The notes under the pieces: model-generated
What the model was told of the DNA's origin: nothing
The model's database searches: none
The model's input: the letters and a program-made list of their open reading frames with translations, nothing else
Source: Basidiobolus meristosporus CBS 931.73
Lineage: Eukaryota; Fungi; Basidiobolomycota
Direction: 5' to 3'
Assembly: GCA_002104905.1 (NCBI GenBank)
Contig: MCFE01000396.1
Span: 17,850-81,849 of the forward strand
Length of the DNA: 64,000 nucleotides
Program-made: the position numbers and the translations under genes
Part shown: piece after piece, positions 45,016 through 60,860 of the stretch
Layout of the letters: each line of letters starts with the position of its first letter
How positions within the stretch are numbered: the first letter of the stretch is position 1

Positions 45016-46079
45016 ATGGCCCTGGCAAAGGTACTTAACCTTGGTTTCGAAGTCCTCCTCGAGAGAGACACCATCCTGAATGGCTTCGACGTCGACACGC
45101 GAGTCAACAACTACATCCGTGGGAAAGTTCTCCTGCACCCCAAGATCAGGACCAACCTGACTGAGCTCAACCTGGTTCTGGAAGGCAAATTCTCCGTGCA
45201 ATCGCTTAAAGGTGGGTGATGGCGTGATGCCGTTGGTTCCCGAGTGCTTTCGCTAACTGATTAACTCCAACAGGTTTCAAACGGATTGAAAAGATTATCA
45301 TCGAACAGAAGGTGACTCTATCGGAGCCACAGACGGAAGGGGTCCCTCTCACTCCCACTTGCCATGAGTATCCCTTTGAACTCTGCCTCCCTGGGGATCT
45401 TCCTCCATCGTTCCGGGGGAATTACGGTCAGCTCACCTACACCGTCCGCGCTTTGGGGACCTTGTCCAGTCACTGGTCGCTATCGTACATCAAGGCTGAG
45501 CGGGACCTGCAGATCTTCCGGGATATGCGGCCCCTGTATGATACCTATCGAACCCAGTTGTCGGGCAATTGGATGGATTCCATCGAATACAATGCCTCCT
45601 TCTCCACAAATACCTACAAACCTGGAGACGTCATTCCCATCACCTTCAAATATCACGTGAAGGACCAGAATATCCGCATCAACCATATCATCGCGTTTCT
45701 TCGGGAGTCTAGCGTGTATCGTATGCCCTCGGATGAGCACACTAGCGGACACATCATCCGCGAAGACCGCGAGACCATTGATCTTAACGGGGACTACAGC
45801 GAGGGGTTCTACGACGGGGAGTGCCAGTTGGACCTCCAGATCCCCACGAACCTGCTCAGCTACGATTGCCTCACGGAGTACGGTCAGATCACCCACAAGA
45901 TCAGCTTTCGTATTGACTACGTGCTGAACGGGAGCATCAACCATTTCAGTGTTGCCATCCCCGTCGCCATTCTACCCACCAGCCTGACCGAGCTCTTGGA
46001 CACTCACGTGGACGAGCAGCTTCCCATGTACGACGTCATCGCTCCCCCACCATCGTACTGCCAGATCGAGGTCTCCTAA
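45016..46079 (+). CDS. Alpha-arrestin (arrestin N/C folds, C-terminal PY motifs), two exons
   Basis: YIRGKVLLHP, intron 45212-45273, HEYPFELCLPGDLPPSFRGNYGQLTYTVRA, YKPGDVIPI, ITHKISFRI; terminal LPMY and PPSY motifs. Confidence 0.85.
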
Positions 46080-46353: not shown

Positions 46354-49300
46354 CTACTGCAAGGACTTGATTTTATATCGGTAGGTGATCAGCACATCTC
46401 CTCCTAATCTCCAGATAAACGCCCGAATGGTCGCCAACGTGATGGTGGGCGGGAGAACCTAAACGAACGAAAGCGTAAGCCACCCTTTCGGCCCTATACC
46501 TGGCGGTCACATGAGCCTACCTGATCGTGACAACACAGTTCTATCCATTGCTCCGGTTTGATGGTGGAGTCGACGCCGTTAGAGCTGGACCCGTACGCCT
46601 TCCCATAGGGACTCGTGGCGGGCTGGTCAAGCTCCAGCTTTTCAACAATGTACGAGAGCAACTTTCTCACCCGAAGCATACGGTTCGCAATCAGTCGGGA
46701 GTTGCTGTAGAGGGGGGGGGGTGTTGGTAAGTGCATCGTTCACACCGAAGGGGATGCGGATCCTACTTACCCGTTGGGCAGCTCGGAGAGCCCGGAGTTT
46801 TCATGTGGCTTCAGGACGAAGCTGAGCTTGACCGGTTCTTTAACCGGGATTCTTCCCTGGATGCCGTGAGACGTTAGTGTTAGTCACCGTCCAGCCCACA
46901 GTCTTCCTGCTTTTCCACTTACCTTGAACAGGAATTCAAGCAACCATATCGGGGCCACGTCATCTATGTAGTGGTAATCCACACCGAGATTGCCCACGGT
47001 TCCATGGTAGATGTCCACCGACGTGCTGGCCTCGTGGGTTTCCTCGGAGATGATGATGTTGGTATCGGATGGAATGGACAACGGGGGAGTTTCCTGTGCG
47101 ATGGCGGTCTCCTCCTAGATTTGTCGGGGGGGGGGTGGGAAGTTAATGAATTAGCCGTCGACGTCGTGGTCGATGTTCATCCCTGGTTCACGTACCCGTT
47201 CGGAGTGTCTGGCGAACTCCTCTTCGCGGTGCGACGACTCCTCCTTCTTGGGCATTCCGGGTGGATTCAATGTGGGTTGCGCAGGGTGGGTATTCGTTGG
47301 ACTCGAAGGAGGAAGCTGGCTCGACACGGTGGTGCCACCGACCGGCTGGTTGTTGGACACGTGCTCGCTCTGCTCCAGGTCATTCTTGGGTTCGTTTCCG
47401 GGGGTTCGGGAGAGCTTTTTGTAGGAGAACGACTTGAGTCGTCCCATAAAGCTGGACGAGGGCCCGGTGAGCACCGCCGGCTGTGGACGGGTGGGGATCG
47501 GGACCGGTCCGACTGTGCTGGTGGTGCCCGTGCTGGGGGTGGAGAAATAATCGTTAGATGCTAGAGTGGCGGGGGCAGTGTGTAGAGGTGGGTTGACGCT
47601 GGAGTTGGGCGGAGATCCGTAGGAGAAGTAATCCCCGCCATTCGAATTGAGCGATGGAATTAAGGACTGCGGTTGGGGAGATAGCACCCCTGTGGGCGAC
47701 TTGGGTACTACGCTATGTGGAGTGGTAGCTGCCGCGGGGGTGGTGGCAAGGGGCAGCATCGGCTTGGGCGCCATCATTGGCGGTAGTTCCTCATTACTGG
47801 ATTTATGCTGGTCCTCGATGTTGTGGGTGAGGCTGGTCATGCCAAGCCCGTAGTTTCCATTGCTAGGTGTTGGGGTGCGGGTGGGTGGTAATGAGTGACC
47901 CGGCTGAAAGTGATCGGGTGTTGTGGAGGGGAAGGCCGGGGCGTACCCATTCTGGGACAGCGGGAGGCTCTGAAGAGGCCTTGTCTCGGTATAGTTGGCG
48001 AAAAGGTTGCGAAGCACCCATTTCCCGAGGTTCACTAGAGCCAAGAGTATGGTTTAGTTCAGGTTACTCAGCCATCCGGCTGAAGGGAGTATTCGACTGA
48101 CCTCTTTGATCTTCCGAAGGGTTCTCCTCTTCGGGTAGATCCAGCTCATCCAGATACACTTCTCCGTCAAAGCATCTTCTCTCGTCAAGACACACGGTCA
48201 ATGCCTATAGTCGCACCAAGGTGAGTTGTCTAGCAAAAGTCCAAAGGAAGAATGAACCAGAAGCTTACTCCGATTCTAGTGTCTATAGAGCACCAGGTAG
48301 CCACAGACTCTTGGGTATTCATTTCGGAAACTAGCTCATCGAGGTTCGCCTTTCCGAGAGTTTTCAACTTCTTACACTGTGTCACATGGGGTCAACGGGG
48401 TGGGTTTGGGTCCTGGGGAAATCGGTGGTGGAGGCACTCTACCTGAATAATGTCCCATAGATCCACCACACCGTCTGTATCGAGAGTGAGAACGTGGCGG
48501 CGATTATTGAGCATGGCGTGCTTAATCAGGCCATGTTTTCCTTGGAACAAACGACTTTAGTCCCCCGCTACCGGATCCCAGTTTCCACAAGATGGGTTAC
48601 CTTCAATCGTCTCGTCGGGCTCTGTTCTCATCGGAACCACGATTTCTGGCACGAGGGGATCATCTACCACCGAGTAATTCAAGGACAAGAAGGAGGTTGG
48701 TCGGCCTTTCCGTTCGCCCAGGAGAAGTTCGAGATGTTCATCTCTAGAAGGCGACTCTGGGACGGCCATTCTTATCATGGACGAGGCGGGGACGGGTGAC
48801 GAGGGTGGGAGATAGAGGCTGGAGCTCATACTCTTCCCAGAGGGGAGAGTGGTATCTCTCTAAGATGGAGTCAATGAGCCTTCGTTGGAGGTGAAGATTG
48901 GTGATACTCAAAAGTGGTACGTACCCAGCGGTTGATGCTTGAACTAGCGGTTGCGGTCCAGATGTACTTATTGTCGACAGCTACCAACTAGAGCCGTACT
49001 CATATTGTTAATCAGACTGAGCGTCGGGTGCCTTATGAATGGAGTTTACCTTGACAACTCCATGCTTTTCTTTGCATATGGCAACGCACTCTCCGTCGTT
49101 TCCATCGGAATCCGATCCTCTAGAGCCAACGTAAGTCTTGGTCACCAAACCGTCTTTCCTCCGGCGTAGAACGTCTCCAGCTGGGGATGGTCGGAATACA
49201 GGGACCAAACCGAGTCGGAATGGGTCGTATAGGTGTTGATGCACCTTTGGGCAGAAAGGGACCACAGCTTGATGGTGGAATCGGAGGAGGCGGAAAGAAG

Positions 49301-50472
49301 CTGGCGAAAGGAAAAATCAGTTTCCGAACAACGGGAATGAAGTTGCTCGAGTTGAACGCACCAGCTGACCATCATCACTTATCAAAAGGGCTCGGATGTT
49401 GTCGGTATGCCCGGTTAGCTTGGTGATCTTCTTACCACTGCGTGGATCCCACACTCGGACCACCTAAGCATCGACTTGGTTAGTTCATGGATTGGGGGGG
49501 GAGGAGAGAGCGGTGCAAATGCATAGAACAGAGATCGACCTTTTCGGGAGACCCAGAGGCCAGGATACTTCCGTAGCGGTTACAGGCAAGCGCGTATACG
49601 GATGCTATGGGGGATGCCTCAGGAAGCGTCACTTAGGCTGGGTTAGTACGCGGAAGGTGAGCCAGAATATGGAGCTACTTGCGGGCCTACCTATGGGTGC
49701 GTAACTTCCATCTGAGCCGGATCTTCCTTCGTCAATATCCCAGATATGGATTTTTCGATCCAAACCACCACTGGCGATCCAGTTGGTGGAAGGTCCGTGG
49801 GCCAGCACTTTGATGTAATCACTATGATACCCAACGGTAGTCACGTTGGGCACCGATGAATGGGGGGACCAAAGCTTCAGAGTTCTGTCTGCCGAGGCGG
49901 AGATCACTAGAGGGGAGAGGGGAGCTCGTTAGTGGTGGAGCGAACAGACCACCTGTCTCATCATACGTACGACTTTGCCCTTGATGGCACAAGACAATGT
50001 CGTTGACCCAGTCGGTGTGGTGTTGCGAGGATTGTCTAAAGGTGGATTTCGGCACGGCACCCTAGAAACGAAGGGGAGGAAAGCCCTTTAGTCAGCGGCT
50101 CGGTTGGGTGACAAACGCTCGGGCCCGAACGGGAGCCGAACCCATTACCGTGGTCGGATCGATTTCCCAGGCGGCGGACTCTGCTTGGGTCTGGGTGTGA
50201 TCGGCGCCCACCAGGTATTCCCCGTCTAAAACTACGCTGATGGGAGAGGAGTAATTGGTGTCGAGAGATCGAGCTGGTTTGAAAGGCAGATGCAGATCCC
50301 AGGAAGCCACTAAACCATCTCTACCTGCGGAATAGAGGATCCCTCCTGGGGCACCTGAGGAAGTCGGGGTAGTGGTATCAAGAGCAAGTGAATTGATACC
50401 CAGCAAATGGGCAGGGGTACCGTTTCCTTGGTTGAGAATGTAGGAAACCTTACGTCTGACTGCACGTTTCAT
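46354..50472 (-). CDS. WDR48: WDR48/UAF1 (Duf1/Bun107) deubiquitinase cofactor, multi-exon
   Basis: [132 protein letters not shown]-type end. Confidence 0.9.
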
Positions 50473-51105: not shown

Positions 51106-53603
51106 TTACATCAAAATTTTCTCTTCCAGCTTCTGGCGAAGGTCCTGGACTACCGGATCATCGACATCCTCGGTGCTGTCGATGAACTGGCTCATAAGGC
51201 TTTCCAGGCCATTCTTCCGTAGTGTCTCCTCGATGTGATCGATCAGTCGATAGCACGAGGCGACGAAGGGGGCGGAGAATGGCGGCTCGATCATCTCCAG
51301 GACCTAGAGGTTGGTTAGGCAGGTTAGCGAACCGTCGGCCGACATTGGTTGGTGGTGGAGGGTATCAGGACTGACCTCACGGACGAAATGGATCAGCAAA
51401 CTCTCGTCCATCTTCTCAGCTGCATCCTCGACATAGCTCATAACAGGGGTCACGAAGTTGAGCTGCATTAGATAGATCAACCGGTCCAAGAGCATCTTGC
51501 GGAAAATCATCTGTTGCGAACCAGGCCAGGTTCAAGTTCGGGTTAGTGGTGCTCTTACACGGTGGTCGAGTGGAAAGTAGCTTACCAGGGTGGGGCCACC
51601 CAGAGAGGTCAGATCCATCTTCATGCTTGAGATGAAGATCTCGAAGATTCGTTGCTGCTGGAGCGGATGGCGATATGCGATCTGGTGCATGTGGTTAGTG
51701 ATCCTGCCCTGGTCGCCCGCGCCCATCATCTGGAACTTACCTCCTCCAACAAAAGATGGGGAAGGGACACCTCGGTCGTCCGGAAGTAGTTCTCATAGTA
51801 GCTTGTTTCGTGAAGGAGATTGTCAATATACAGCGTGAATCCTAGTGCTATGACGGGAATGCTGTTCGGGTGAGGGATCAGTACGGCGGTCTTAAGCGGC
51901 CCCACACAACCACGCTTACTTGAAGTAGGGCAGAATCTTCCCGGTGACGGTGTTCAGCTCGGTCCCGGTGGGCTTCCGTGACAGCAGGCTCTCCAATAGC
52001 TTGAGCGCATCAAAGTTGCTTTGCAGATCGGCCTTGTCAAGCTTCAGTACACTGGGTTAGCACACATGTCTATGCAGCATCCTCGGAATGCAGATACCTG
52101 GCCAGCGCTATCGGTCTTGACTCCTGTAGCGTATGCGATCAACCATAGGTATTTTTCCTTCAACTCGGGTCTCATCGTGTTCACACCTTCGCTGTTGGGG
52201 ACTAGGACAGCTGACAGCAAAATTTCTAGTAGGTTGCGGGGGTCAGTGGGGGACAATGCAGTTGACAGGTAGGTCTCAGAAGCTTCTCACCTAACAACTC
52301 AGAGTCTCTGAGATGCTCGACGGGCGGAGGAGCTGGTCCAGTGTAAGCACGATAAAGCTATAGATAAACGGGGGATTAGTGCCAGGGGAGGGAAGTATGT
52401 GACGTTGCTGTTCATTACCGAGATCACATCTCCGGGGGAAGGAACCTTTCCTAGCAAGATGGCCGCTAGAGGGGCGGCGATCTGGGTGGGTGTTTCTTCC
52501 AAGAAGAAGCGAAGGGTGTTGACGAGCTGGGGTCTGCAAAGACGGGTGAGTATAGGCCCAGGAAAGCCAGCGGGAATGGGTTACCTATTGAACTTCTCAT
52601 TGACCTCTTCCTCGAGTTCTTTCGAAATACGGGTGAACGCAAAGCCACCGGGCTCCTTCATGAGTTGGCGAATAAGGATCTGGGTAAACAGGTAGGTATA
52701 CTCGTTCTGGCACGACAATTTCTGGTGGATCAAGGCCAAGGTTAGTGCTGAACACCAAGAGGTGTGTGGAATGGGGACCTACGAGTAAGTCGGGAATTTG
52801 ATCATTCAGAGTGACATCGTCCAGGTCCTTGAGCTTCTGAAGGGTCCCCACGACAACCCCGGTAAATACGTTCACATACGTGGACGCAGTGGCAACGCTC
52901 GACATCTCCGATTGATACCCGGCGTCGGAGATTCGCTGAACAAACAAACCAAAGTTAGCCTCGCCAGACACGTGGGAACGAAAGGGACTCGACGATAGTA
53001 CCTGGATGGCAAAGTTGAGCAATAGACACTTCTTATGCTTCTCCGACAGTTCGTAGATCATATTTCTCCAGAATGGCTCGTGGATCATACCCTCCAGCCA
53101 GGCGGGTGGGTTCTAGCAAACGGGTGAATCGCAATGAGCAAAGGGAGGATGGTGCAGGTTAAGAAGTGGCCAGAAAATACTTCTGAATTCATGAATTCGG
53201 CGTCGACTGTAGTTGGGTTGAATCTCTCCAGGACTCGATCTCGAACGAGTTTCTTCATCTCCAGTTCGTAATCGATGTCGAACTCCTCACACCATTCCGA
53301 GGCGATATTGCACATCTGGGCGAGGCCAACGTATTTCTCGGACAACATGGTGACTGCCTGGAAGGGAGTGCCGCCGTTGGTCAGAAATTCGGTGAGTTGC
53401 TTGTCCATGTTCGGTTCCATGATGGCATCTTACGAGGAAGGGGTGAGTAAAAAGTAGAGATCCTTCGCCAGCAAACAACTGCGTACCTATCCCAGAAAGG
53501 GCAGCCCGAGCTTTGTCTTGTCTTGCTTGTTTGTCAGCCTGAAAGAAATCCGGATCAACACGATGAATCAAACGGAAAGAAGAAGATCGACACACTCTAC
53601 CAT
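51106..53603 (-). CDS. NELFCD: Negative elongation factor C/D (TH1-like), multi-exon
   Basis: DAIMEPNMDKQLTEFLTNGGTPFQAVTMLSEKYVGLAQMCNIASEW, WLEGMIHEPFWRNMIYELSEKHKKCLLLNFAIQRISDAGYQSEMSSVATA, IAYRHPLQQ, LLDRLIYLM..VTPVMSYV..LLIHFVREVLEMIEPPFS. These align motif by motif with human TH1L (YIMEPSIF..GGSPENVIQLLSENY..AQTVNLLAEW; LMLNFTVKLISDAGYQGEI; LLDRMVHL; FVTEVLDVIAPPY). Confidence 0.9.
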
Positions 53604-55674: not shown

Positions 55675-56007
55675 TGTTGTAAAAATTTGTAATTCCACCT
55701 AAATATTCACCTAACTTAATCACTTATATCATTACCTTTAAATCCTAGGTAATACTGATCAAATTCCTTGTCAGGATTTACTTAGAATATTTACCCTGGA
55801 CATAAAAAATTAGACAAGTTGTCCAAACAGCCCCAAACTTTGCACACATGCTCTTGGGACCTTCCTTAACATATTCTACATGTTTGTAATGCCAAGATCA
55901 TGTAAAAGTATAAATACTACTTTTACATACAATAACTCATTAAGTGAAAATCACATCATTTACTTGTTCTCCCAATCACTTCCAATATCTTCAAGACTCT
56001 TACAACA
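55675..56007 (+). repeat. 5' LTR of the outer copia (333 bp)
   Basis: TGTTGTAA..TTACAACA termini; homologous to the inner LTRs, with a substituted central segment. Confidence 0.9.
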
Positions 56008-56537
56008 AGTTATAAGCCCCAAGCTGTCACTCTCTGCAATGTTTACTACTGCTATCACTGGAATTTCTCCCTCTGCTGAAAAGTTGGATGGATCTAACTA
56101 CCAAGTGTGGAAGGTGAAGATGAAGATGCTGCTACAAGAAAGAGGCCTTTGGAATATTGTCATGGGAGAAGAATTCCCTCCTAAGAACATGGGAGAGGAA
56201 GCCTTAAAGCACCAGAAGAAAGAACAAAGTGCCTTTAACTGCATTTGCCTTAATGTCAAGGACAAATTGCTAATTCAATGCTCAAGAGCAAAAACAGCAA
56301 AGAATGCCTAGAAAGCATTAGAAGACACCTACCAGTCATGTTCAGCTGCTAAAAAAGTGTATCTTAGACAAAAATTCCTTACCACAAAGATGCTGCCAGG
56401 AGAAGAAATGAAAAATCTGTTAACAGAATAACCCTGCTGGTGGATGAGATGGAATCTGTAGGCATACCAACTACTGATGCAGATGTGATAGTTACCATCC
56501 TGAATGGCCTGACAGACAAGAGTCAGGGCCTTGTATC

Positions 56538-56885
56538 TGTTGTAAAATTTGTAATTCCACCTAAATATTCACCTAACTTAGTCACTTAGATCATTACCCT
56601 TAAATCCTATAGAATACTGACCAAATTCCTTGTTGGGATTTACTTAGAATATTTTCACCAAAATACCAGGTACCCAGAACATGAAAATTCTCAAAGTTGT
56701 CCAAACAGCCCCAAACTTTGCACACATGTTCTTGGGACCTTCCTTAACCTATTCTATGTGTTTGTAATGCCAGGACCATGTAAAAGTAAAAATACTACTT
56801 GTACATTCAATAAATCATTAAGTGAAAACCACATAATCTACTTGGCCTCCCAATCACTTCCAATATCTCCAAGACTCTTACAACA
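56538..56885 (+). repeat. 5' LTR of the inner copia
   Basis: TGTTGTAA..TTACAACA; 11 substitutions versus the 3' LTR by manual count. Confidence 0.95.
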
Positions 56886-56897
56886 GGCTATGAGCCC
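56886..56897 (+). promoter_or_regulatory. Primer-binding site of the half-tRNA-iMet type
   Basis: GGCTATGAGCCC directly after the LTR; 11/12 match to the complement of the initiator tRNA-Met anticodon arm GGGCUCAUAACC. Confidence 0.75.
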
Positions 56898-56916
56898 CAA
56901 GCTGTCACTCTCTGCA

Positions 56917-59900
56917 ATGTCTACTACTGCTATTACTGGAATTTTTCCCTCTGCTGAAAAGCTGGATGGCTCTAACTACCAAGTGTGGAAGGTGAAGATG
57001 AAGATGCTGCTACAAGAAAGAGGCCTTTGGGATATTGTCATGGGAGAAGAATGCCCTCCTAAAAATGTGGGAGAGGAAGCCTTAAAATACCAGAAGAAAG
57101 AACAAAGTGCCTTTAACTGCATTTGCCTTAATGTCAAGGACAAATTGCTAATTCAATGCTTAAGAGCAAAAACAGCAAAGAATGCCTGGAAAGCATTGGA
57201 AGACACCTACCAGTCATGTTCAGCTGCCAAGAAAATGTATCTGAGACGAAAACTCTTTACTACAAAGATGCTGCCAGGAGAAGAAATGAAAAATCTAATT
57301 AACAGAATTACCCTGCTGGTAGATGAGATGGAATCTGTGGGCGTACCAACTACTGATGAGGATGTGATAGTTACCATCCTGAATAGCCTGACAGACAAGT
57401 TTCAGGGCCTTGTATCAGCCCCAGAGTCCAGAACTGAAGATTTGACCTTAAATTACGTATATGGAAGGCTCCTGGATGAAGAATTAGGAGAATCAAGTGC
57501 CAATAAGAAGGAAGAAGAAAATGCTTTAATAAGCAATGATAACCAACAAAGGAGGTACCCAAGACCCTACAAAGGCAACAGCAACCTATTTTGCAACTAC
57601 TGCAAAAGGAAAGGACACAAATCAGTCCGGTGTCTCAAAAAGAGAGATTGTCAGCAAAAGAAACCTGAATATGGAAATGCTGCAACAAATGAGGATAGAC
57701 TATTCATATCTGCACTAAATATGACCACAAACAAGGATTCTCAGACGTGGTATATTGACTCTGGAGCTTCTCAACACTTTACACACCAAAAAAAACTTTT
57801 TACCCAATATCAAGAAATTCTAATTAAGAAGGTTTTCATGGGTGGCATTAGAACACTTGATGCAGTGGGAGAAGGAACTATCCAAGTAAACCTTAGAAGC
57901 AGTGAAGGAAGCCATACACTGACCTTTAAAGAAGTACTTTATGTACCAGAAATAGCCAAGAACCTACTCTCTGTAAGCAAGGCCACAGCAGAAGGACTCA
58001 GTTTCAGTTTTGACAATTCTGGATGCAGGATCACTGATCAAAATGGTGCCCATATTGCTTTGGGCATCAGAGATCAGATTCTATACAAGTTGACTTATAT
58101 TCCATTATATCTGGAAGCCAATATAATTAACTTACATGAAGAAACACCAATGCTTTGGCACAGGAGATTTGGGCACATCAATTTTGATTATTTGCGTGCA
58201 ATGATCAAATATCAGCTAATTTCTGGAGTGAAAATTGATCCCCCAGCTAATTTGGAGCACTGTGAAGCTTGTATATATGGGATACAAGCCAGACAACTGT
58301 TCAAGAGCTCTGGGTTAATCAAAACTAAGAAAAAATTAGATCTTATTCACTCGGATCGGTGTGGACATATGCAAAATTTATCCTTAGGTGGGATGAAGTA
58401 TTTAATCACTTTTATTGATGATTATACAAGATACACATGGGTCTACTTCATGGAGAGAAAGGAAGAACCTCTGTCTAAGCTCAGGGAGTTTAAAGCCATG
58501 GTGGAGAGAGAAACTGGTGAAAAAATCAAGAAAATACGCTCTGACAATGGTGGAGAATATACCTCAAAACTCTTCATTCACTTTTGCAAAATTCATGGGA
58601 CAAAGCAAGAGACTACTGTACCATACTCCCCACAGCAAAATGGAGTAGCAGAATGAGCTAACAGATCAATAATTGATATGGCAAGATCCATGATCCATGA
58701 TCAAAAATTATCCTATGATTTTTGGGCGGAATCAGTTGCCACTGCTGTATATCTTAAAAATAGAAGTTATAACAGAATGCTTTGTAATTCTCTTCCATTT
58801 GAAGCATGGTATGGATACAGACCAAGTGCAGAACATCTAAGAATATTTGGGTGTACAGCATATTCCAAAAAACTAGCCAAAAATCAGTCAAAATTTGAGC
58901 CAAAAAGTGTAAAATGCATATTTTTGGGCTACAGCAATGAGAGTAAAGCATACAGACTCTACAATACCAAAGCAAAGAAGCTGATCAAGTCCAGGGATGT
59001 GTTGTTTGATGAAAATTCAAAATTTTTGCAAAAAATGACATCAGATGATGACAAAAATCTGATCTCAAGTCCACCAATTGTCAGGATTAAATCAGAGCAA
59101 AACTATAAAATTTTTTCACTCCAGAGGACTCTACAACCGTGGTTCAGCCAGAATTAGTGCCCAAGAATATCCCAGAAGTGATCATTCCAGTATCAAATGC
59201 CCAGAGATCAAATTGGACAAGACATAGCCCAAATTACTATATCAATGAGGGTACAAACTTAGCCTATGCCTATTCAGTCCATATTGATGAGCCCCAGACT
59301 GTAAAAGAGGCCCTAAATAGCCCTCAGACAAAGTTTTGGAGATCTGCAATGACTGAGGAATATCAGGCACTGATGGAAAATCAAACTTGGGACTTAGTCA
59401 AATTACCAATCAACCAAAAATCAATTGGATGCAGATAGGTTTTCAAGACAAAATACAAGGCTGATGATACAATCAAAAGATACAAAGCAAGACTTGTAGC
59501 CAAAGGATACTCTCAAACAAAAGGACTTGACTATACTGAGACCTTTGCAGCGGTAGCCAAGTTTAATTCCATCAGATTAATATTGGCTATTGCAGCCAAA
59601 TATAAGTTTTTTATTCATCAAATGGATGTAAAAACTGCATTTTTGAATGGAGAACTTGATGAGGACATGTATATGGACCTGCCTGATGGGTTTGATGACC
59701 AAGATAACCCCCATTTGGTCTGCAAGCTTAAAAAGTCACTATATGGTCTCAAACAATCACCAAGAGCCTGGAATTGCAAGATAGATTCTTATTTGGAATC
59801 TTTGAGTTTAAAAAGGAGTAATGCTGACTATAGTATATACTATAGGCCAGATAGAGCAAGTCCAGTTCTATTAGCTCTATATGTGGATTATCTTATTATA

Positions 59901-60860
59901 GCTGCCAATAACCAAGAAACATTGGAAGAGACTAAATCCAGCCTATCTAAGGAGTTCAAGATGTCTGATTTAGGAGAACTTAGTTACTACTTAGGGATTA
60001 AGTTCTCCATAGACAGAAGTACCCAGACTATTACCCTAAGCCAATCCAAGTATATTCAAGATATACTAAAGAAGTACAAAATGGAAGACTGTTGACCAGC
60101 AGCTACCCCAATGGAGACAAACCTTAACTTGGTCAAAACTCAACCATATTTAGAGAGCTTGGTGCCATCTGAAAGCCCTGACTTTCCTTATCAATCTATG
60201 ATCGGCAGTCAGATGTATATCATGCTTGGAACACGTCCAGATATCTCATATTCAGTGGGAGTTGTCAGCCAACATAATCAGAACTATGGTTCTGATCATA
60301 TTGCAGCAGTTAAGCGGATTTTTAGATACCTAAAAGGAACTGCTGATATTTGCTTAAGATACACTTATAAGGACTCAGAACAAGATCTTGTGGGATACTC
60401 TGATGCAGATTGGGGATGAAATTTAGAAGACAGAAGATCCCCTACAGGATACACCTTTCTTTACTGTAAAGGAGCAATTTCATGGAATTCAAGAAAGCAA
60501 CCAGCCGTAGCACTTTCCAGCACAGAGACAGAGTATATGGCAGCCTGTGAAGCTACAAAAGAAGCAATGTGGTTAAGAAAACTTCTTACAGATTTAGGCC
60601 TATGTCAAAAAACACCTATTACATTATTTCAAGATAATTAAGGATGTATACAATTAGGTAGAAATCCAACTTTTCATGCTAGAACCAAGCACATAGATAT
60701 TAGACATCATTTCATACGTGAAGCTATAGAGAATAACTTAGTTAGCTTAGTTTACTATCCTACAGATGAAAGGATTACAGACATATTTACCAAACCATTA
60801 GCTAGAGACAAGTTTGAATATCTTAGGTCAAAATTAGGACTAATCAGTATGAACATTTAG
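56917..60860 (+). pseudogene. Disrupted single-frame gag-pol of the inner copia
   Basis: LDGSNYQVW, CNYCKRKGHKSVRC, WYIDSGASQH, WHRRFGH..CEAC, HSD..RSDNGGEY..NGVAE, QMDVKTAFLNG, YVDY (catalytic D lost), YSDADW. Stops at 58654, 59436, 60093, 60417 and 60638; -1 frameshift near 59110. Confidence 0.92.

Follow-up and report, generated by a model that had tools for sequence, protein, structure and literature searches.

A spliced NELF-C/D (TH1) gene of 14 coding exons (1686 nt, 561 aa and a stop codon) lies on the minus strand at positions 51106-53603 of a 64,000-nucleotide stretch of Basidiobolus meristosporus CBS 931.73 DNA, which is referred to here as the window. The gene structure and the family match demonstrate that the gene is real, intact and spliced and, judged by its sequence, the locus is a NELF-C/D orthologue (TH1, PF04858) in an early-diverging fungus. 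The gene is not new: its identification is a confirmation of what is already in GenBank and in the published survey data of Chivu et al. (bioRxiv 10.1101/2023.02.19.529146).

Gene structure and the 5' end

The stop codon, TAA, occupies positions 51108-51106, and the deposited start ATG has its A at position 53603. The limits given in the earlier note are exact: the stop codon ends at 51106 and the deposited coding sequence begins at 53603. The 14 coding exons are listed below in the order of translation, with TH1 matches given as E-value and profile positions.

Exon 1, 53601..53603, minus strand: ATG alone, as in the deposited model; the weakest part of the model
Exon 2, 53487..53538, minus strand: ADKQARQDKARAALSGI, phase 1 end; equals ORX90174.1 residues 2-18
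Exon 3, 53181..53428, minus strand: (D)AI followed by MEPNMDKQ...MNSE, internal Met at 53420; TH1 7.2e-11, profile 51-130; N-terminal conserved block
Exon 4, 53002..53112, minus strand: NPPAWLEGMIHEPFWRNMIYELSEKHKKCLLLNFAIQ; TH1 3.5e-12, profile 135-170
Exon 5, 52783..52935, minus strand: RISDAGYQSEM...; TH1 5.9e-5, profile 172-210
Exon 6, 52585..52721, minus strand: phase 2 end; TH1 5.3e-4, profile 222-264
Exon 7, 52419..52533, minus strand: open frame with GT-AG borders, equals ORX90174.1; no Pfam match when scanned alone
Exon 8, 52291..52357, minus strand: LYRAYTGPAPPPVEHLRDSELL, phase 1 end; TH1 0.16, profile 306-327, colinear
Exon 9, 52098..52225, minus strand: equals ORX90174.1; no family or PDB match when scanned alone
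Exon 10, 51920..52041, minus strand: phase 2 end; from the exon/intron script, equals ORX90174.1; no Pfam match when scanned alone
Exon 11, 51741..51861, minus strand: equals ORX90174.1; no family or PDB match when scanned alone
Exon 12, 51586..51681, minus strand: from the exon/intron script, equals ORX90174.1; no Pfam match when scanned alone
Exon 13, 51376..51510, minus strand: MIFRKMLLDRLIYLMQLNFVTPVMSYVE...FVRE; TH1 9.8e-6, profile 484-528; C-terminal conserved block
Exon 14, 51106..51303, minus strand: VLEMIEPPFS... to the stop codon; TH1 0.035, profile 529-574, colinear

Examined one at a time by a script, none of the 14 exons contained an in-frame stop. A comparison by eye of each exon showed the translations, with the four split codons among them, to be identical to GenBank ORX90174.1, annotated as "TH1 protein" of B. 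meristosporus CBS 931.73. The 13 introns are all of the GT-AG type and measure 51-75 nt, and a CTVAY branch-like motif is present 13-36 nt from the acceptor in all except one of them. The GC content is ~0.52 in the gene, and the plus strand opposite holds short ORFs only.

Minor-spliceosome introns were also considered for this gene and rejected, because all 13 introns are of the GT-AG type with ordinary donors and none has a U12-type donor. The earlier note had appealed to a U12 candidate, together with Gemin5, as support for an animal-like gene-expression toolkit, but that candidate falls below every Rfam gathering score within the 64-kb window and is not supported at that threshold; at gathering scores, no Rfam family, U12 snRNA included, was returned on either strand over the whole window (1-64000). 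The Gemin5 finding lies elsewhere within the same window.

The deposited model carries 21 residues upstream of Met 53420, reached by means of two extra 5' exons. This extension is favoured because the motif D-A-I-M-E-P, which spans the junction of exons 2 and 3, fits the family consensus: the equivalent is D-Y-I-M-E-P in human, D-A/S-I-M-E-P in amoebozoans and "Dyimep" in the Pfam consensus. The 5' end proper, with a first coding piece that consists of the ATG only, is a prediction, and nowhere is the model less secure. Intron 1 (62 nt, following the ATG within 53539-53603 on the minus strand) has the donor GTAGAG and is the sole intron of the 13 without the branch-like motif; if it were left unspliced, the ATG at 53603 would open an 11-codon uORF (MVECVDLLLSV, then a stop).

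The odd 5' end, with its ATG-only piece and an intron 1 that lacks a branch-like motif, would suit a decaying or unexpressed relic whose frame has stayed intact through recent descent without any function, as would a search for RNA runs for this stretch, which returned none. Such a relic would nevertheless have to have kept 561 codons over 14 exons without a stop or frame break, all 13 pairs of splice sites, and a motif across the exon 2/3 junction that is the consensus of amoebozoan and human sequences; many other fungi outside the Dikarya also carry orthologues of full length. Because of the 14 intact exons and the widespread orthologues, a relic is considered very improbable.

Membership of the NELF-C/D family

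The protein encoded by this intact gene was compared with Pfam exon by exon, using the 12 exons from Met 53420 onward and leaving out exons 1 and 2 on account of their small size. TH1 (PF04858) was matched by seven of the 12, in colinear order and covering profile positions 51-574 of 579. Three exons exceed the 24-bit family cut-off by their own score, namely exons 3, 4 and 13 with 41.9, 46.2 and 25.0 bits respectively. The only other Pfam match was a sub-threshold one to DUF7416 on exon 4 (14 bits), and no foreign domain was seen in the exons scanned. The same three exons were matched among solved structures to NELF-C/D chains and to nothing else: exon 3 to human residues 58-136 (E 8e-6, ~26% identity), exon 4 to residues 142-176 (E 4e-8, ~51% identity) and exon 13 to residues 492-535 (E 7e-5, ~43% identity).

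These matches bear out the reading, first made from the letters of the DNA, of a spliced protein colinear with human TH1L/NELF-C/D, and they extend to the two conserved blocks on which that reading was based. The N-terminal block, MEP..GG.P..LS..Y..AQ..N..EW, falls within the exon that starts at 53428 and corresponds to human residues 58-136; the C-terminal block, LDR..PV.SY..FV.EVL..I.PP, runs across the exons at 51510-51376 and 51303-51106, the first of which maps to human residues 492-535. On these alignments both blocks are real and far above chance. In the reciprocal direction, a search that failed to return TH1L was named in advance as grounds for rejection; exons 3, 4 and 13 returned NELF-C/D chains only, and the independent reciprocal pipeline of Chivu et al. 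accepted ORX90174.1.

The likeness to human NELF-C/D extends over the protein as a whole, in that a single Pfam family (TH1) spans nearly all of it, the order of blocks runs from DxIMEP...GG.P...LSE.Y...AQ...EW to LLDR...PV.SY...FV.EVL..I.PP, and the lengths are similar (561 aa in Basidiobolus, 590 aa in human). Unlike its human counterpart, the Basidiobolus protein has diverged so far in its middle third that single exons from it are no longer recognised. The exons concerned (7 and 9-12) matched no Pfam family when each was scanned alone; against solved structures, exon 9 matched designed repeat proteins only (E > 0.2) and exon 11 matched nothing. These blanks are uninformative on homology because the pieces are 32-42 aa of a diverged helical protein. 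For the same region, conservation of the NELF-A-binding horseshoe receives no exon-wise support, since the middle third is without family or PDB match.

The five middle exons that find no match alone are also what could be said for a chance or domain-only likeness, in which the protein would belong to another helical-repeat family. That reading is effectively refuted by the exon-wise Pfam and PDB matches: seven exons match one Pfam family in colinear order across profile positions 51-574 of 579, the PDB matches of exons 3, 4 and 13 are exclusively to NELF-C/D, the length is close to that of the human protein, and a published pipeline independently kept the sequence.

At the level of single residues, human polar patch 5 as defined by Vos et al. 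2016 (PMC4940160) is represented in exon 13 by K494, D498 and S528, all conserved in the alignment, and by E536, which lies one residue beyond the exon 13 alignment and is matched by extension. Several basic or polar surface residues of the human protein, linked to RNA or partner contacts, are changed in Basidiobolus, namely R506 to L, R531 to I and Y532 to H.

Distribution in fungi and the rest of the complex

The textbook view that fungi are without NELF rests on two model yeasts. The gene described here is one of many that place the loss of NELF inside the fungi, so that the action of the ancestral NELF core could be tested in non-Dikarya fungi. This point is already contained in the public annotation of ORX90174.1 and in the data of Chivu et al., who describe NELF-B and NELF-C/D as a core that is widespread in eukaryotes and was secondarily lost in yeasts. 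Vos et al. 2016 (PMC4940160) likewise concluded from homologues in Dictyostelium and Chlorella that NELF is ancient and has been lost in some lineages. Among the papers listed by a literature search on NELF in early-diverging fungi, none contains the word NELF.

Chivu et al. discarded candidates with other Pfam domains, and in their final NELF-C/D set (FinalNELFCDcandidates_renamed.fasta) ORX90174.1 is the entry EP00863 Basidiobolus meristosporus P005113. The set holds 16 fungal entries and none of them is from Dikarya, which were within the species sampling, as they are present in the CDK files of the survey. The entries are from Batrachochytrium, Spizellomyces, Rhizophagus, Rhizopus (two fragments), Phycomyces, Anaeromyces, Homolaphlyctis, Neocallimastix, Dimargaris, Thamnocephalis, Syncephalis, Lobosporangium, Basidiobolus, Zancudomyces and Coemansia. 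The loss in Dikarya proposed in the earlier note fits this set, in which 16 of 16 fungal entries are non-Dikarya, and is not a new idea.

The TH1 proteins of other non-Dikarya fungi (Lobosporangium, Dimargaris, Thamnocephalis, Rhizophagus, Phycomyces, chytrids and Neocallimastigomycota) resemble that of Basidiobolus as full-length orthologues with the common motifs RISDAGYQ.E and YFR..E.P.P.LLLEEIA.RHP, and differ from it only by divergence at the species level. In the chytrid and Neocallimastix entries, the N-terminal block is missing or diverged.

The same survey indicates which partners the protein might have. Going by occurrence counts, Basidiobolus appears a single time in each of two NELF-B files, the final FASTA and the Pfam table, and it is included in the NELF-A-like FASTA as well as in the figure S6 alignment; the final files for NELF-A, for NELF-E and for HEXIM hold no Basidiobolus entry. 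According to Chivu et al., NELF-E is found in metazoans only, HEXIM occurs in animals and in the unicellular lineages closest to them, some unicellular eukaryotes have NELF-A homologues, and the HDAg-like Pol II-binding domain is present in animals and Capsaspora only. It had been suggested that the fungus retains a full or a partial NELF. The survey files point to a partial complex at most, made up of a NELF-B candidate, NELF-C/D and a NELF-A-like protein; a full complex finds no counterpart in them, there being no NELF-E entry.

Such a set would differ from human NELF in being without NELF-E and HEXIM and in having an A subunit that is only NELF-A-like in the Chivu et al. survey. It resembles the 'core NELF' of Dictyostelium (NELF-B and NELF-C/D) in that B and C/D are present and E is absent, and departs from it in the additional NELF-A-like protein. 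Chivu et al. present PRO-seq data for Dictyostelium and for no NELF-bearing fungus.

Possible role and genomic surroundings

In animals, NELF holds early elongation complexes, being bound to RNA polymerase II alongside DSIF. By homology, the Basidiobolus NELF-C/D protein would be the scaffold of a NELF-type complex, in which its conserved N-terminal part (human residues ~58-176) would join NELF-B. This part corresponds to a piece of human NELF-C/D whose structure was solved separately, as a fragment of 147 residues (8JJ6 chain D); in structures of the paused complex, that piece joins NELF-C/D to NELF-B. At the other end of the protein, the C-terminal helical horseshoe would hold a NELF-A-type partner by its N-terminal domain; Vos et al. 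2016 (PMC4940160) described the NELF-A/C interface, in which the C-terminal horseshoe binds NELF-A, as well as the side that faces NELF-B.

The reading that is favoured, and considered fairly probable, is that a single-copy NELF-C/D gene serves a reduced NELF (B, C/D and A-like) that acts on early elongating Pol II near promoters. The reduced complex, without NELF-E or HEXIM in Basidiobolus, would bind early elongating Pol II and bring about a modest slowing or stabilising near promoters, and so may represent the ancestral 'core NELF' state rather than the strong focal pause of animals. From homology with better-known NELF complexes, we infer the formation of the complex, its binding to Pol II and a pausing effect in Basidiobolus. 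Chivu et al. reported that pausing indices are higher with the B-C/D core alone than without any NELF; the literature searched yielded no nascent-transcript data for any NELF-bearing fungus.

A rival that has to be taken seriously, and that is thought rather unlikely, is that the protein is a true NELF-C/D orthologue with a role outside promoter-proximal pausing and without measurable effect on the residence of Pol II near promoters; it might take part in processing at RNA 3' ends or linked to the cap, or the B-C/D pair might act in the cytoplasm or in signalling. Consistent with this, NELF-E, which is animal-only in Chivu et al., and HEXIM are both absent from the Basidiobolus survey entries, the HDAg-like part of NELF-A that binds Pol II is reported from animals and Capsaspora only, and a published report (PMC10591015) describes a pausing-independent cytoplasmic function for mammalian NELF-B. 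A role without pausing is, however, at odds with the pausing indices of Chivu et al., which are higher in species with B and C/D only than in NELF-less species, and with the fact that the best-conserved parts of the protein are those that build the complex in animals.

Beyond the reduced NELF with a modest effect on early elongation that is preferred here, a bolder proposal would be that Basidiobolus and many non-Dikarya fungi possess a three-subunit NELF (A-like, B and C/D) which, with neither NELF-E nor HEXIM, imposes a real promoter-proximal pause that is CDK9-sensitive. This is doubtful and offered as speculation; if true, pause release was once regulated in fungi, and an entire layer of transcription control disappeared in the Dikarya.

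Several neighbouring features of the window can be described briefly. The same-strand downstream neighbour of the NELF-C/D gene, ~630 bp past its stop codon, is an apparent spliced WD40-repeat gene at 47151-50472 on the minus strand, with a likely first exon from an ATG at 50472, a WD40 match at 49632-49907 and a long Ser/Pro/Thr-rich ORF at 47151-48044 that has no family match. Further away, an arrestin-fold ORF at 45312-46079 on the plus strand (Arrestin_C 3e-15, Arrestin_N 5e-8) probably belongs, as one exon, to a fungal alpha-arrestin gene of the ART/LDB19-like kind. On the other side of the NELF-C/D gene, a copia-type LTR retroelement occupies 55880-60100 on the plus strand, within an AT-rich stretch (GC 0.31-0.40). 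Its main ORF, at 56758-58656, encodes 632 aa with gag, beta-barrel and integrase parts, and the element appears to be frame-broken because the pieces beyond 58656, including RVT_2 at 59583-60095, are in other frames. Directly upstream of the 632-aa ORF, a partial duplicate of the gag N-terminus (143 aa) is present at 55880-56311.
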